From the sequence record PQ182779.1: a stretch of 64,000 bases of DNA; one strand, written 5' to 3'. The translations under genes and the position numbers were made by a program. The notes beneath the pieces are model-generated. The model saw only the letters and a program-made list of their open reading frames with translations. It ran no database searches and had not been told where the DNA came from. Below are positions 13,953 through 19,683 of the stretch, piece after piece; the first letter of the stretch is position 1, and every line of letters begins with the position of its first letter.

Positions 13953-14111
13953 ATGAAAGAAAGTATACTTTTATTAATTGTCACTCTCATTGCATTGCTT
14001 TGTTTCGGCGTATCGTTACCGATGGCCATCCTTTACGGGTTCGTCTCTGTGCTCGTCTGGTATATTGTTTCGCCGTTCGCTCTGTTAGTCTCCGTTACCT
14101 ATTTATCCTAA
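13953..14111 (+). CDS. 52-aa hydrophobic membrane peptide (not in ORF track)
   Basis: SD GAGG; MKESILLLIVTLIALLCFGVSLPMAILYGFVSVLVWYIVSPFALLVSVTYLS*. Confidence 0.75.
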   Translation: MKESILLLIVTLIALLCFGVSLPMAILYGFVSVLVWYIVSPFALLVSVTYLS

Positions 14112-14126
14112 GAGGGAGAAATCATC

Positions 14127-14297
14127 ATGTCTTACTTCATCACGTTAATTCTCACTCTGCTGATCTGCACCTTCTTTGAACTGACTATCATCCCAGCAGT
14201 TCTGGTAGCGTTCGCCGCGGGAGTTATTGGAGCGCTTTCAGAAGAGCAGTTTAACAAAGCCAATTTCAACGCAACTCATTCACCGGAGGCGTTGTAA
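14127..14297 (+). CDS. 56-aa membrane peptide (not in ORF track)
   Basis: SD GAGGGAG; MSYFITLILTLLICTFFELTIIPAVLVAFAAGVIGALSEEQFNKANFNATHSPEAL*. Confidence 0.75.
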   Translation: MSYFITLILTLLICTFFELTIIPAVLVAFAAGVIGALSEEQFNKANFNATHSPEAL

Positions 14298-14416
14298 TGA
14301 AAACGTCTTTCGTGGTACTGGGGATTATTTCCTCGGTACTTATTCTTGACCTGGCTTTACTCCCGGCCTGCGTTTTCGCCGTCGCCGTAGGGGGTTACTT
14401 AAAAGCGGTCAAATAG
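14297..14416 (+). CDS. 39-aa membrane peptide (not in ORF track)
   Basis: SD GGAGG, TAATG coupling; MKTSFVVLGIISSVLILDLALLPACVFAVAVGGYLKAVK*. Confidence 0.7.
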   Translation: MKTSFVVLGIISSVLILDLALLPACVFAVAVGGYLKAVK

Positions 14417-14496
14417 TAGTAAGCGCTGCCTCTCAACAGCGTGAGTAGTGCACTCTCACCCGTAGTTAAATTATTCAATTCAAAAGGTAAATTATC

Positions 14497-14784
14497 ATGG
14501 AAAAAATCAAAGCGTTCTTCTCTTTCTCTTTCACTGAGAAAACCAAAGCAATCTTTGCTTTCATCACCGACACCCTGATCGTTGCCGCGCTGGCAATCTT
14601 CGCCGCGTTCTGCATGGCTACTGCCATGGAAGTGGCGGCCTACGCTTTTGCGGTCTTGGTTATCTTCAGCTATATTCACGATAGCTACAACAACCTCAAA
14701 ACCGTCATTTCTCCTGCCACTGACGGCGAGACTGCGACTGACGCAGGCGAGACCGACGTCTCTGACGCAGCGGTAACCGCTTAA
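14497..14784 (+). CDS. 2-TM membrane protein with acidic tail
   Basis: SD AAAGG; long hydrophobic core; D/E/T-rich C-terminus. Confidence 0.75.
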   Translation: MEKIKAFFSFSFTEKTKAIFAFITDTLIVAALAIFAAFCMATAMEVAAYAFAVLVIFSYIHDSYNNLKTVISPATDGETATDAGETDVSDAAVTA

Positions 14785-14864
14785 GTCGTCACCTCACCCT
14801 TGGCACACGAGATAAGAAGGAAACGCCTTACGATAAGCTAAATTAAATTCTCACACTCTCAAAC

Positions 14865-15068
14865 CGTTATAAGACGATATTTCTCGTTACCCACCCGACA
14901 CCTGTAATCGAGGCTGTGGCGTTGTACCTACTGACTCTTCCGAAATCGAGGAAAGATCAGAGTTCAGGGACAATAGCAGTAAACCCTCTTACTGGTTCGG
15001 TAGTTGCAGAACAATTGACAGGCTTCGCCGTCTGGTTCTGGACATCGCCGTATGCGACTCTTATAACG
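14865..15068 (+). ncRNA. candidate structured non-coding RNA (204 nt)
   Basis: 10-bp perfect closing stem CGTTATAAGA/TCTTATAACG enclosing several nested helices within a 335-nt intergenic gap. Confidence 0.5.
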
Positions 15069-15119
15069 CAAACAACTCTCTCACGTCTAAGTCTACTCTT
15101 AAAGTAAAAGGAAAAAAAT

Positions 15120-15392
15120 ATGTTAATCTTTACTATCGTAATGGGCTTATTAGCAGCGATAGCGATTATCATTGCTGTTGCCGTTGATCGTAATAAGTTA
15201 TTTGGTATCGAAAAACGCAATGAGATCATTAAAGGCTGCTACATCTTCTCTTGCTTGGTCGGTATCTCTGCTCTGTTGGGCTGCGCGTTTGTACCATATT
15301 ACGCAATCCTCTTTATCTTCATACCTGTTTCCGCGTTGGTTTTTAAATACGTAATTGAAGTAGAGCTGGAAATTAATAACTATTGGTACTAG
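15120..15392 (+). CDS. 3-TM membrane protein ending NYWY
   Basis: SD AAGGA; hydrophobic segments. Confidence 0.75.
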   Translation: MLIFTIVMGLLAAIAIIIAVAVDRNKLFGIEKRNEIIKGCYIFSCLVGISALLGCAFVPYYAILFIFIPVSALVFKYVIEVELEINNYWY

Positions 15393-15465
15393 GTAAAAAT
15401 TGTCGTCATTGAGTTCGTAGTTAAATTTTAAAAACTTTGTTCGCTAAAAATAAGGAGATATAACC

Positions 15466-15774
15466 ATGACTCTTTTAATCATTTTTGCTATTCTTGTTGT
15501 CATTGGTTTACTCTGTAGTGCATTTTTTACCATATTCTACCGCGGTAAAGTTGACGCAGACGTCGTTGCCGAAGAGGTAACGACCGAAGCAGTTTGTACT
15601 ACCGAAGAAATGGTTAACGAAGAACCTGCTGTTAACGATGTTCTTTTCTACGGTGAACCAACGGAAAGACAAAAAGAAAAACACAAACGTCATCGTAACC
15701 GCCATCGCGTGTCCGGCAATAACCGCCGCACGTGGCACGACAAATTTGATGATGCTGACTACCAACCACTTTAA
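15466..15774 (+). CDS. N-terminally anchored membrane protein with acidic linker and basic His/Arg patch
   Basis: SD AAGGAG; single TM; KHKRHRNRHR. Confidence 0.75.
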   Translation: MTLLIIFAILVVIGLLCSAFFTIFYRGKVDADVVAEEVTTEAVCTTEEMVNEEPAVNDVLFYGEPTERQKEKHKRHRNRHRVSGNNRRTWHDKFDDADYQPL

Positions 15775-15794
15775 GACAAACCGAGGACTACTCC

Positions 15795-16103
15795 ATGGAA
15801 TTCTATTTGTTCATTTCTGTTGTTACTTTTGCTGTCCTGGCGATGATCACTTTCTTAACCTACATCGCTAACAAAAAGTTAACTGCAAAGTGCGCAACAC
15901 CAGAAGTCCTTTACGATAATTCCTGGAAAGGTCGCTCGATAAGAAAACTCCGTGATTGGACTTGTTTCTTAAGTAAAATCGGGTACCTGATCAGTCATGT
16001 CGCTTTCTGGATCATGCGCGCTGTCTTCGAAGGTCTCGTTTATCAGAAAACAAGAGAAGCGGTAGCAAGAGAATCGTTTCATTCCCGTAATTACTGGTAC
16101 TAG
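15795..16103 (+). CDS. N-terminally anchored membrane protein ending NYWY
   Basis: SD GAGG; single N-terminal TM. Confidence 0.75.
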   Translation: MEFYLFISVVTFAVLAMITFLTYIANKKLTAKCATPEVLYDNSWKGRSIRKLRDWTCFLSKIGYLISHVAFWIMRAVFEGLVYQKTREAVARESFHSRNYWY

Positions 16104-16171: not shown

Positions 16172-16642
16172 ATGAAAAAATTCATTGCTGCTTCACTCAT
16201 CGCCCTGTCCTCTATCGCGTCCTTCAATGTCATGGCCATCGTCAATAATTGGACCGAATCTTATCAGCAGGGTACTCTGGAATTCTACACCGAAAACAGC
16301 GACGGTTTTTCGCTCGCATTCTCTTGCCGCGATACTGGCGATCAATGGCCGGTTCAAGCGCTGTTTCTGAACGGTACTAACGGCAACTCGCTTTCCAGCG
16401 ATGATGATCGCTACGCGCTGGTTATCGAAATGGGCGGTCAGAAGTACCAGATGATCTCTCCTGTTTCTACCGTTGGGGCAAGTAACTGGCGCTTGTTCTT
16501 CGAAGGCGTTAAGAAAACCAAAGCAAAAACCGTTAAGGTTTACGTACAAGATCATCCAGAGACCTTCGTTGTTTTCTCAACTAACGGGCTCAAGAAAATC
16601 GTCGCCGAAAATAAAGGCGGTAACTGCTTCTTTCTCGGCTAA
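16172..16642 (+). CDS. secreted/periplasmic beta-rich protein
   Basis: Signal peptide MKKFIAASLIALSSIASFNVMA; two Cys. Confidence 0.75.
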   Translation: MKKFIAASLIALSSIASFNVMAIVNNWTESYQQGTLEFYTENSDGFSLAFSCRDTGDQWPVQALFLNGTNGNSLSSDDDRYALVIEMGGQKYQMISPVSTVGASNWRLFFEGVKKTKAKTVKVYVQDHPETFVVFSTNGLKKIVAENKGGNCFFLG

Positions 16643-16755
16643 ACAAGTGGGTGGAGAGGGTAAACCCTCTCCGCTCCTAGATCTTTTTCTTTTTTAAGTT
16701 TATTCTGTCTTTCTTTGAGGCAAGCCGCCTAGAATAAAGAAAGGATAGCGTTACC

Positions 16756-16923
16756 ATGTCACAAACCACCCCTGAAAAGAAAGACGAAAGTCTGGATTTT
16801 GATTCATTCACTCTGAGCGAAGAAGAAGCGGAATCGGCGTTAGCGAAAGCCGAAGCGTTTATCGAAGAACAACCCGAAATCGAAGCCAGCGATGACTGCG
16901 AAGGCGGGGCATGTAAAATTTAA
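16756..16923 (+). CDS. 55-aa acidic peptide ending in an NrdA-like redox tail (DDCEGGACKI); not in ORF track
   Basis: SD AAGGA; clean ORF MSQTTPEKKDESLDFDSFTLSEEEAESALAKAEAFIEEQPEIEASDDCEGGACKI*; followed by a terminator. Confidence 0.85.
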   Translation: MSQTTPEKKDESLDFDSFTLSEEEAESALAKAEAFIEEQPEIEASDDCEGGACKI

Positions 16924-16927
16924 TTCT

Positions 16928-16955
16928 AAGGGCGTTTTCGCCCTTATTTGTTTTG
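16928..16955 (+). terminator. intrinsic terminator
   Basis: AAGGGCG-TTTT-CGCCCTT then T-rich. Confidence 0.65.
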
Positions 16956-17375
16956 TTTCATGAAAGGGTATTCAACGTGTTTAAACCGGCTAATGTTAGT
17001 AAACTAGTTAATATTTATCTCCCCTTACCGAACTACCTGCGCGCTGCCGATATCGAACGGTTATCAAGGGCGTTTAAAACCAGACAAGTTCTTGAGGGTG
17101 AACTTAATCCTCAATTAACTAAACTCGCTTGGGAAAATACTAACGAATTCTTCGCACGTTTTAGAAAGATCGTGACGCCTTCTCACTTCATCGGTAATTT
17201 CAGACTGACCGATAAAGGGATCAAAGCCGATATCGCCATTACGGATAAAACTTTGATCGAATACGAAGGAGTGATAACCCTTAAACGCCGCACCTTCAAT
17301 GACTATTGGAAGTTGGGTGACAGTTACAAAGACGCCCCAGGATTCTTTGGGGTAGACATTTTCACACGGAGCTAA
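16953..17375 (+). CDS. possible truncated, inactive prohead-protease paralogue
   Basis: LEGELNP...F..RF..I..PSH.I resembles the GE(L/Y).HP...R...I....SH.I core of T4 gp21/phiKZ gp175-type proteases but lacks the His. Confidence 0.4.
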   Translation: MFHERVFNVFKPANVSKLVNIYLPLPNYLRAADIERLSRAFKTRQVLEGELNPQLTKLAWENTNEFFARFRKIVTPSHFIGNFRLTDKGIKADIAITDKTLIEYEGVITLKRRTFNDYWKLGDSYKDAPGFFGVDIFTRS

Positions 17376-17377
17376 TC

Positions 17378-17611
17378 ATGGAAACTGAATGGGACCACAT
17401 TCTTCTCACGTTACAACTGGCGTACAGCGAGCACAAAACTCAAACGGCTATCAAAACAGCCGCCAGGTTAATGGCGACTAAAGTCAAAGAAATTGACTGT
17501 TATAACTGGCTGATGAAAGTGACACTCTCGCCGGCGCCATTGAAAGTTTTAGTCCGCGAACTCAAGGAGCGTCGCCCTGATGACTTACGATATTATCCGG
17601 GGGTCGCGTAG
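17378..17611 (+). CDS. hypothetical protein
   Basis: SD GGAG; 77 aa. Confidence 0.65.
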   Translation: METEWDHILLTLQLAYSEHKTQTAIKTAARLMATKVKEIDCYNWLMKVTLSPAPLKVLVRELKERRPDDLRYYPGVA

Positions 17612-18077: not shown

Positions 18078-18425
18078 ATGAAAAAGATTACTTTGATGGC
18101 CATCGCTCTACTGTTCACTGCTACGACCGCCCAAGCTGCGCCGAATAGCGCTTGTATCGATCGCGTCAACACTGAGGTTAAAAACGCGGTGACGTTGTTC
18201 CCTGGCGTTAACCCTAAAACCGTTCATGTCACCTTTATGCGTGCTAAGCCTTCTTCGCTTTCTGCCATGGAAGGTGAGGCGCAGACGCCAGGGTATAAAG
18301 TTTACAGCGCGGTCTCTTTCACGCAGAAAAAGGAAACCGTTCGTTGGTTGAATGAAAGCGGTGTTGTTTTTGACGGAGATGACACTTGTTCTGTACTTTA
18401 CACTAATCTGGATGTCGCGGGATGA
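18078..18425 (+). CDS. secreted/periplasmic protein
   Basis: SD AGGAG; signal peptide ending TAQA; two Cys. Confidence 0.75.
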   Translation: MKKITLMAIALLFTATTAQAAPNSACIDRVNTEVKNAVTLFPGVNPKTVHVTFMRAKPSSLSAMEGEAQTPGYKVYSAVSFTQKKETVRWLNESGVVFDGDDTCSVLYTNLDVAG

Positions 18426-18673
18426 GCGATAGACGTTTAATTGATCACGAGATGATCGATCTGCTCGTTACATTAGCCATAGCCTTTCGCGAACACAACG
18501 GAAAAGCAAAAATCATGAAACGGGTCGCGGAACGGATTTTTAAACGTCTTCGTTTTGACGAGACGAAAAATATCTGCGAACAATTCATTGTTTATCCTGA
18601 AAAGGCCGAGTTTAAATTGAACGTCTTAACCCAAACGTTCTACGGTCGTCAGATTTTAAAAATCCTGGCCTAA
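18422..18673 (+). CDS. hypothetical helical protein
   Basis: ATGA overlap with the previous gene. Confidence 0.65.
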   Translation: MSDRRLIDHEMIDLLVTLAIAFREHNGKAKIMKRVAERIFKRLRFDETKNICEQFIVYPEKAEFKLNVLTQTFYGRQILKILA

Positions 18674-18720: not shown

Positions 18721-19683
18721 ATGAATAATGAAATAATCGTTTATTACCACGACCTTTGCATGGACGGTTTCGCGGCAGCGGCAATCATGTATCAATATAC
18801 AAGGCTGCAGACTTTCATCCCGGTAAACTACCGTGCTATGCCGGACTTAGAAAATGAGGAGCCGGTGCATATTGTTTTTGTCGATTTCACCCCACCGTTT
18901 GAATGGGTTGAGAAGAACGCGGCACGTATACGGTCTATCGTGATCCTCGATCATCATGCAGACAAAAAAGAAGAATGTGATAAGATCCAAAAATTCTTCG
19001 GGGCGACGGTTGTTTATTTCGACACAGAACTTTCAGGGGCGGGTTTAGCATGGAAATATGTTAATTCTACCCCTATGCCAGAAGTGATTCGTTTAATCAA
19101 TAACCGCGACCTCTGGATTGCAGAAGAGAGCGAACGCAATTACCACGAGCTCTTTGTTCAGTATTTGAGGAAGGGGGATAAGGATGAAATTTTCCCACCT
19201 TTCATTGAGTTGTTTAAATACAGCAAAGAACAAGTTGAAGAAATTCTCCGCCCGCAGGCCGAACTGTTAGTAAAAGGTCGGGATAAAAATATTGCGTTTC
19301 ACCTGAATAAAGCAGTCATTATTGAAGAGGCGGCAGAAAGTCCTTTCTCTGTGGCGTATATTTCTGCTCCGTATTATTACGCTTCTGAAGCGGCCAGTAC
19401 AATCATGGCCCAAGACGACAAAGTTAATCTGGTCGTGAACGTAACGTTAAACCGGAACGGTCTCGGTTTGTCGTTCCGATCACGCAAAGGGACAGGTTTG
19501 GCACAACAAGCCGCGGTGCGATTTAACGGTGGTGGGCACGCTGAGGCTGCTGGCGGGGTCTTTGACCATCCTGTGCCTTTTACCGTGCTTCATGAGATGA
19601 TTTTCCGCACTGATCCCCATGAGGCGTATCTTAACTTTTTACTCGATCAATACAGTGAACTGGGTACAAATAACAAAGGGTAA
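18721..19683 (+). CDS. DHH/DHHA1 phosphoesterase
   Basis: YH..C.DG, VFVDF, ILDHH, SFRS and GGGH..AAG motifs. Confidence 0.9.
   Translation: MNNEIIVYYHDLCMDGFAAAAIMYQYTRLQTFIPVNYRAMPDLENEEPVHIVFVDFTPPFEWVEKNAARIRSIVILDHHADKKEECDKIQKFFGATVVYFDTELSGAGLAWKYVNSTPMPEVIRLINNRDLWIAEESERNYHELFVQYLRKGDKDEIFPPFIELFKYSKEQVEEILRPQAELLVKGRDKNIAFHLNKAVIIEEAAESPFSVAYISAPYYYASEAASTIMAQDDKVNLVVNVTLNRNGLGLSFRSRKGTGLAQQAAVRFNGGGHAEAAGGVFDHPVPFTVLHEMIFRTDPHEAYLNFLLDQYSELGTNNKG

Follow-up and report, generated by a model that had tools for sequence, protein, structure and literature searches.

A free-standing ribonucleotide reductase-type redox tail encoded by Klebsiella jumbo phage vB_kp_MJ359

The kpMJ359_036 gene and its surroundings

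Gene kpMJ359_036 lies in a 64,000-nucleotide stretch of DNA (the window) that corresponds to bases 1-64000 of record PQ182779.1 (100% identity, identical coordinates), the 300,816-bp genome of Klebsiella phage vB_kp_MJ359. The phage is a nucleus-forming jumbo phage, encoding the tubulin PhuZ, a nuclear shell protein, and split RNA polymerase subunits. The product of kpMJ359_036 is a small acidic protein (6.0 kDa, pI 4.05, net charge -13) that ends in a cysteine-containing tail of the type found in NrdA, the large subunit of class Ia ribonucleotide reductase (RNR); its features are listed in Table 1. The first-pass annotation had proposed an open reading frame with its own Shine-Dalgarno sequence and terminator, and all of these elements are found at the locus.

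Table 1. Features of the kpMJ359_036 locus (positions in the window)
Feature	Position	Strand	Remarks
Hairpin and T tract closing upstream gene 035	16651-16699	+	Read from sequence
Shine-Dalgarno-like AAGGA	16741-16745	+	10 nt 5' of the ATG; similar spacing in FBKp24
kpMJ359_036, 55-aa acidic protein	16756-16923 (stop included)	+	Annotated as hypothetical protein in PQ182779.1
N-terminal conserved module, residues 9-21	16780-16818	+	Acidic residues with spaced Phe/Leu
Variable middle segment, residues 22-38	16819-16869	+	Predicted helix
C-terminal module, residues 39-55	16870-16920	+	Acidic linker and NrdA-type redox tail
Cys48 codon	16897-16899	+	Within the C-terminal module
Cys53 codon	16912-16914	+	Within the C-terminal module
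Intrinsic-terminator-like hairpin and T run, 3' of kpMJ359_036	16927-16956	+	Read from sequence

Since a hairpin and T tract precede kpMJ359_036 and a terminator-like hairpin follows it, the gene looks like a separate small transcription unit. Pairing in the hairpins on both sides is retained through compensatory changes in phage FBKp24, and the relatives of the gene in phages Miami and phiR1-37 also have annotated terminators immediately 3' of the peptide gene. A T-rich candidate promoter motif at 16682-16699, which recurs before two other genes, was rejected; these elements are the T tracts of terminators.

A single-sequence AlphaFold2 model of the protein contains one helix, spanning residues 22-38, with block mean pLDDT values of 81 for residues 21-30, 73 for residues 31-40, and about 55 for residues 41-55; the model is consistent with flexibility of the C-terminal 15 residues. 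The first-pass description of the linker as acidic and flexible thus agrees with the composition of the protein and, as a prediction, with the model. Single-sequence searches with kpMJ359_036 gave nothing meaningful in PDB, Pfam, PHROGs or NCBIfam, the only Pfam matches at E values up to 10 being two spurious ones.

Substitution counts against the diverged relatives in FBKp24 and Centimanus (78% identity) differ sharply along the gene: residues 9-21 have 8 synonymous and 0 non-synonymous differences and residues 39-55 have 4 and 0, respectively, while residues 22-38 have 6.3 synonymous and 9.7 non-synonymous differences (whole gene, pN 0.13 and pS 0.67). With 12 synonymous and no non-synonymous differences over the two conserved modules, the pattern indicates that kpMJ359_036 is under purifying selection in the N-terminal module and the tail module. 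A protein identical to that of vB_kp_MJ359 is encoded in 61 blocks of a public assembly index, metagenomes included. Six copies of the gene differ by one synonymous change in total; the 300 nt upstream of them have 5-10 differences.

Several observations concern the neighbouring genes. Seven very small, strongly hydrophobic ORFs (genes 028-034; 39-102 aa; 13953-16103) lie just 5' of gene 035, in a region whose gene content varies between otherwise near-identical relatives. Gene 035 (16172-16642), directly upstream of kpMJ359_036, has a signal-peptide-like start and a precomputed Pfam match to PF27224 (YfjT); our own Pfam scan of it at E 0.01 was empty. Genes 038 and 041 (17378-17611 and 18422-18673) are small paralogues that both match DUF7740. 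The gene for a 320-aa DHH phosphoesterase (18721-19683) is called as two ORFs of 148 and 172 aa in metagenomic relative L180, a split that amounts to one break.

Likeness of the tail to the C-terminus of class Ia NrdA

The kpMJ359_036 protein ends in SDDCEGGACKI, compared with DDDCESGACKI in E. coli NrdA (761 aa, strain retrieved) and DDGCESGACKI in the NrdA of PDB chains and most Enterobacterales. Identity to E. coli NrdA is 7/8 over the last eight residues, as the first-pass annotation had stated and the retrieved NrdA bears out, and 8-9/10 over the last ten; the cysteine pair of the phage protein aligns with NrdA residues 754 and 759. At the nucleotide level, the only match of positions 16860-16923 to 5,426 E. 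coli genomes (blastn) is the 3' end of nrdA, with 27/30 nt identical. The two tails share their position at the extreme C-terminus, the C-x4-C spacing, glycine at the fourth position, the Lys-Ile end, and the acidic lead-in. The phage protein differs in being free-standing, with neither catalytic barrel nor ATP cone, and in that the likeness stops about 10 residues in.

Among 80 nrdA loci of Enterobacterales, the encoded tail is CESGACKI in 68, CEGGACKI in 10, and CAGGACKI in two, and the penultimate lysine is invariant in all 80. The CESGACKI group, to which kpMJ359_036 matches at 7/8 residues, includes Raoultella, Erwinia, Serratia, and six Klebsiella species; these six are species other than Klebsiella pneumoniae, which is not among the 80 loci. 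The CEGGACKI group, an 8/8 match, includes Pectobacterium, Brenneria, Tatumella, Symbiopectobacterium, and Yersinia alsatica. Because CEGGACKI occurs in 10 of these 80 host enzymes, the comparison indicates that the phage tail is a natural NrdA variant, one position away from that of the host genus (Gly instead of Ser).

A family profile of 17 members was searched against all 177,635 distinct PDB sequences. The 14 best matches are all class Ia RNR alpha chains (E 0.007-0.7), although many profile rows had been fetched by a pattern that requires the tail, so that the search measures the specificity of the motif for RNR and not its conservation. In 13 of the 14, the last profile position falls on the last residue of the chain; in 8vhp_A it falls one profile position short. 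Another of the 14 matches, 1qfn_B, has 25 residues and was deposited as a chain of ribonucleoside-diphosphate reductase 1; it is the NrdA tail peptide from a structure with bound glutaredoxin 1.

Similarity of kpMJ359_036 to NrdA beyond about 10 C-terminal residues is not significant (shuffle p 0.99); for the Miami-type peptide, similarity upstream of the last eight residues is borderline (p 0.05). With the likeness of kpMJ359_036 confined to so few residues, common descent with NrdA is unproven. The protein carries the C-x4-C pair of class Ia RNR alpha at its extreme C-terminus; at 55 aa it has no barrel or large-subunit domain detectable with Pfam or NCBIfam. Nor does it resemble the thioredoxin or glutaredoxin fold, its cysteines forming a C-x4-C in a predicted flexible tail instead of a CxxC, with no Pfam match. 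No other ORF in the 300-kb phage genome ends in C-x4-C-x-[ILVM].

A family of free-standing peptides and a portable tail

The first-pass annotation had not described the large family to which kpMJ359_036 belongs, the second conserved module near its N-terminus, or the recurrence of the tail on unrelated proteins. With kpMJ359_036 as query, tblastn found small ORFs labelled hypothetical in 40 phage records; with the Miami homologue as query, 86 records were found, the weakest matches being of a different kind (annotated NrdA C-termini of three marine phages, a cyanophage fragment, and a podophage RNA polymerase). Searching 1.84 billion representatives with phmmer added four relatives. Relatives of the peptide occur in at least 86 records, nearly all of them jumbo phages of 210-307 kb, and their hosts include Klebsiella, Erwinia, Dickeya, Serratia (PCH45), Salmonella, Yersinia (phiR1-37 g117), Proteus, and others. 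Members are acidic ORFs of 40-85 aa with an N-terminal acidic/aromatic motif and an NrdA-type last eight residues, features that are all present in kpMJ359_036. Miami-type peptides are contained in phrog_10239, which PHROGs lists without known function; kpMJ359_036 falls below the threshold for phrog_10239 and matches no PHROG.

Both cysteines are kept in every relative found by the searches that did not require them (tblastn, phmmer); non-conserved cysteines would have counted against the first reading. Among relatives found without a tail requirement, position 2 of the eight-residue tail is Glu or Asp and position 3 is Ser or Gly, apart from a single relative with Gly at position 2, Asp at position 3, and a cysteine spacing one residue shorter; position 4 is Gly and position 5 is Ala or Gly. 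Position 7 is mostly Lys, replaced by Glu in PCH45, Met in Dickeya phage JA33, and Thr in coliphage Bp4, and the last residue is Ile, or Leu in two relatives. In family alignments, Phe18 is invariant in A4 and both cysteines are invariant in A1 and A4. Such constancy of the cysteines while neighbouring residues drift points to thiol-disulfide chemistry and not simply to the filling of a site. Strict tracking of the host by tail variants was rejected as a description of this variation; phages that infect one and the same host, Erwinia amylovora, carry three variants. In the Erwinia and Dickeya relatives, a dCMP deaminase gene is located close to the peptide gene; in Miami, an ORF with a weak HD-domain match (Pfam HD, E 0.005) stands two genes upstream of it.

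Two exact-pattern scans of IMG/VR returned 76 ORFs ending in the tail, 51 of which are not RNRs. True NrdA, confirmed by local BLAST, accounts for the other 25. Small free-standing peptides of about 26-86 aa, with several unrelated N-terminal types, make up 37; eight are PF13876 (N4 gp48-like) proteins and six are other fusions, in proteins of 263, 296, 164, and 123 aa. Across tblastn and IMG/VR, the tail stands at the extreme C-terminus in more than 100 sequences. The combination of PF13876 and tail is found in the N4-like phages of Enterobacterales KP8, TR2, Jura, Bp4, Frozen, and CB1; most other PF13876 members align to about residue 120 only, short of the tail. Salmonella phage SA002 also has the 164-aa type, with a domain of about 110 aa fused to a Miami-type peptide. 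No homologue of the partner domains fused to the tail elsewhere was found in vB_kp_MJ359. At two IMG/VR loci the tail-bearing gene lies amid genes for DNA polymerase A, FEN exonuclease, and ThyX; at a third it adjoins head-tail joining genes.

Some individual cases may be recorded here. The PF13876 protein of coliphage Bp4 (L175:1504-1884), with Thr for Lys, and those of seven related N4-like phages carry the RNR-type tail. The fusions of the ~110-aa domain, in frame with a Miami-type tail peptide, are encoded at L061:1138-1629 (SA002) and L014:2750-3241, and their N-terminal domains are homologous to each other (E 3e-8). Three IMG/VR contigs of 44-49 kb (L018, L146, and L174) encode a 61-aa tail protein with a non-acidic, Tyr/Lys-rich N-terminal half, which is combined with either tail variant, Ser or Gly. 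Two further IMG/VR loci, L040 and L041, each have a tail-bearing phage nrdA in two pieces; in one a long insert lies between the pieces, and in the other they overlap.

Possible roles in host DNA-precursor synthesis

No RNR of any class is annotated in the 300-kb vB_kp_MJ359 genome, window included; local tblastn with NrdA and NrdB of E. coli and Colwellia phage 9A gave no match in the 300 kb, the ten largest unannotated ORFs contain no RNR domain, and no ORF with a redoxin-like CxxC (thioredoxin or glutaredoxin) was seen. The phage does carry genes for thymidine kinase, thymidylate kinase, thymidylate synthase, dCTP deaminase, DHFR, PRPP synthetase, and NAD salvage, and thus equips the steps around RNR but leaves out RNR itself. 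Co-occurrence with RNR was followed genome-wide in vB_kp_MJ359 alone; in the loci fetched for other free-standing peptides, neither NrdA nor NrdB is close to the peptide gene. The annotated thymidylate synthase (PQ182779.1, 252381-253760, outside the window) is 459 aa, unusually long for the enzyme.

These results divide the interpretation first given to the locus. Its account of the tail and the linker, of a window free of nrdA (to which the rest of the genome can now be added, by annotation and tblastn), and of a compartmentalised infection, for which the PhuZ and nuclear shell protein genes speak, stands. Its proposal of a split RNR, with the tail given in trans to a tail-less phage NrdA, does not: the annotation, tblastn, and the ten largest unannotated ORFs give no RNR to be completed, and a check for a tail-less NrdA finds no recognisable NrdA in the phage at all. 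Phage RNRs in pieces do exist, with alpha function distributed over separate ORFs in the two IMG/VR cases L040 and L041; these keep their catalytic pieces, whereas vB_kp_MJ359 has none, and free-standing peptides have no NrdA or NrdB nearby in the loci fetched. A split enzyme is therefore barely credible. The other two hypotheses of that interpretation, a redox shuttle and a decoy, both survive, the sequence evidence fitting either.

In class I RNR, the tail cysteine pair reduces the active-site disulfide and is then re-reduced by thioredoxin or glutaredoxin (PMC9669993; PMC4078304). The kpMJ359_036 protein has the tail of NrdA, conserves it, and shares it with unrelated proteins, in a phage with neither RNR nor redoxin. 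As the tail letters are kept, the cysteines are invariant, and the phage supplies no RNR or redoxin of its own, the host NrdA-thioredoxin/glutaredoxin relay is the most economical set of partners, and kpMJ359_036 most likely works in trans as a copy of the redox tail of host NrdA, exchanging electrons with host NrdA and with host thioredoxin or glutaredoxin. Specifically, it may serve as an auxiliary redox shuttle for host class Ia NrdA, a tentative reading to which we assign a probability of about 0.4. On this view the free tail would share the partners of the tail built into NrdA: host thioredoxin or glutaredoxin 1 would reduce its two cysteines, which would next undergo disulfide exchange in trans with the cysteine pair in the active site of host NrdA. 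With free tails available in reduced form, host RNR would turn over faster, and it is on this enzyme that the phage, having none, depends for its 300-kb genome. The N-terminal acidic/aromatic module probably gives a second contact. Chain B of 1qfn, a free tail peptide of comparable length, is presumably a competent glutaredoxin ligand; it is a laboratory fragment of NrdA, whereas kpMJ359_036 is encoded by a gene in nature and brings an N-terminal module as well.

The least certain step is the net effect on host RNR, boost or block. We infer a boost, since a blocker would not need both cysteines and the phage needs host dNTP synthesis. Against a shuttle stand the relatives in which the penultimate lysine is replaced by Glu, Met or Thr, the two that end in Leu, and the one with shorter cysteine spacing; moreover, tethering keeps the local concentration of NrdA's own tail high, so that the contribution of a free peptide may be small.

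The same sequence evidence would also fit an inhibitor or decoy that competes for the NrdA active site or for thioredoxin and glutaredoxin and so lowers host RNR regeneration. Yeast Sml1 and its kin are precedents of this kind, being small, mostly without fixed structure, and directed at the large subunit and tail-mediated regeneration, and a small disordered RNR inhibitor acting on this regeneration was reportedly described by Zhang and colleagues in 2007. Sml1 resembles kpMJ359_036 in size and disorder; it carries neither a copy of the tail nor a conserved cysteine pair at its end, and kpMJ359_036 has no sequence relationship to Sml1/Spd1-type families detectable with Pfam or NCBIfam. Peptides that copy the C-terminal tail of NrdB are established RNR inhibitors (PMC3483043), and the N-terminal module loosely resembles this docking tail, sharing with the inhibitor peptides an acidic stretch and spaced aromatic/aliphatic residues, although the motif is internal in kpMJ359_036. 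An RNR-less phage has no obvious gain from dNTP starvation, however, mixed disulfides with redoxins would resolve fast when both cysteines are present, giving weak sequestration, and a pure blocker would not require two invariant cysteines; inhibition is possible, if doubtful. Portability argues instead for a docking tag or adaptor, in which the tail is an address that brings cargo to host NrdA or a redoxin, the cargo being the N-terminal module in kpMJ359_036 and whole domains elsewhere; alternatively, the tail could feed redoxin-derived electrons to the attached domain. The same tail closes eight PF13876 proteins, proteins of 263, 296, and 123 aa, and the fusions with the ~110-aa domain, and in kpMJ359_036 itself a variable helix links two modules, each conserved in its own right. 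Within RNR, though, the tail makes transient contacts, and the attached domains have neither a homologue in vB_kp_MJ359 nor known functions, so an adaptor is rather unlikely.

A related proposal makes kpMJ359_036 a two-headed mimic, with an NrdB-like N-terminus anchored in the beta-tail groove of host NrdA so that the NrdA-type tail reaches the active site, and regards the tail more broadly as a portable coupling module across several phage families. Chimalliviruses, N4-like phages, and others would then tie proteins of their own to the host RNR-thioredoxin/glutaredoxin relay, and in nucleus-forming phages the module might couple the compartment of the phage to the supply of dNTPs. The N-terminal module does loosely resemble host NrdB C-termini, which dock on NrdA: a PSSM of 22 NrdB C-termini scores 10.1 bits on it (shuffle p 0.003), and 8 of 20 peptides reach p < 0.05. 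The reversed matrix scores 11.2, and because the match is not orientation-specific the two-headed mimic, which we consider unlikely, is not the main reading. A chance likeness, a gene remnant or an unrelated cysteine peptide such as a RiPP precursor would explain why similarity spans about 10 residues only and why kpMJ359_036 has no Pfam, NCBIfam or PHROG match. Yet the tail is under selection and recurs at the extreme C-terminus in more than 100 sequences, the family profile picks out RNR alpha specifically in the PDB, and the ten neighbouring ORFs have no maturase or modification-enzyme domain; such an origin is very improbable.

RNR is the bottleneck of DNA-precursor synthesis, and many large phages lack it. 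In the literature searched, from which subscription journals were mostly absent, no free-standing RNR tails or printed tail motifs were found, and to our knowledge no solved structure shows the RNR tail docking step; natural tail peptides could be used as probes of how the flexible tail docks. PF13876 proteins and phrog_10239, which share the tail of kpMJ359_036 and have no known function, gain from it a first functional handle on families of hypothetical proteins, among them the N4 gp48-like proteins of phages that are in wide use as models. If the shuttle reading is correct, a 55-residue protein that taps RNR regeneration would be a very economical means of controlling host dNTP supply and a clear case, in a bacterial virus, of short-motif mimicry of a host enzyme. 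The occurrence of the detached tail on many phage proteins suggests an undescribed route into host DNA-precursor synthesis.
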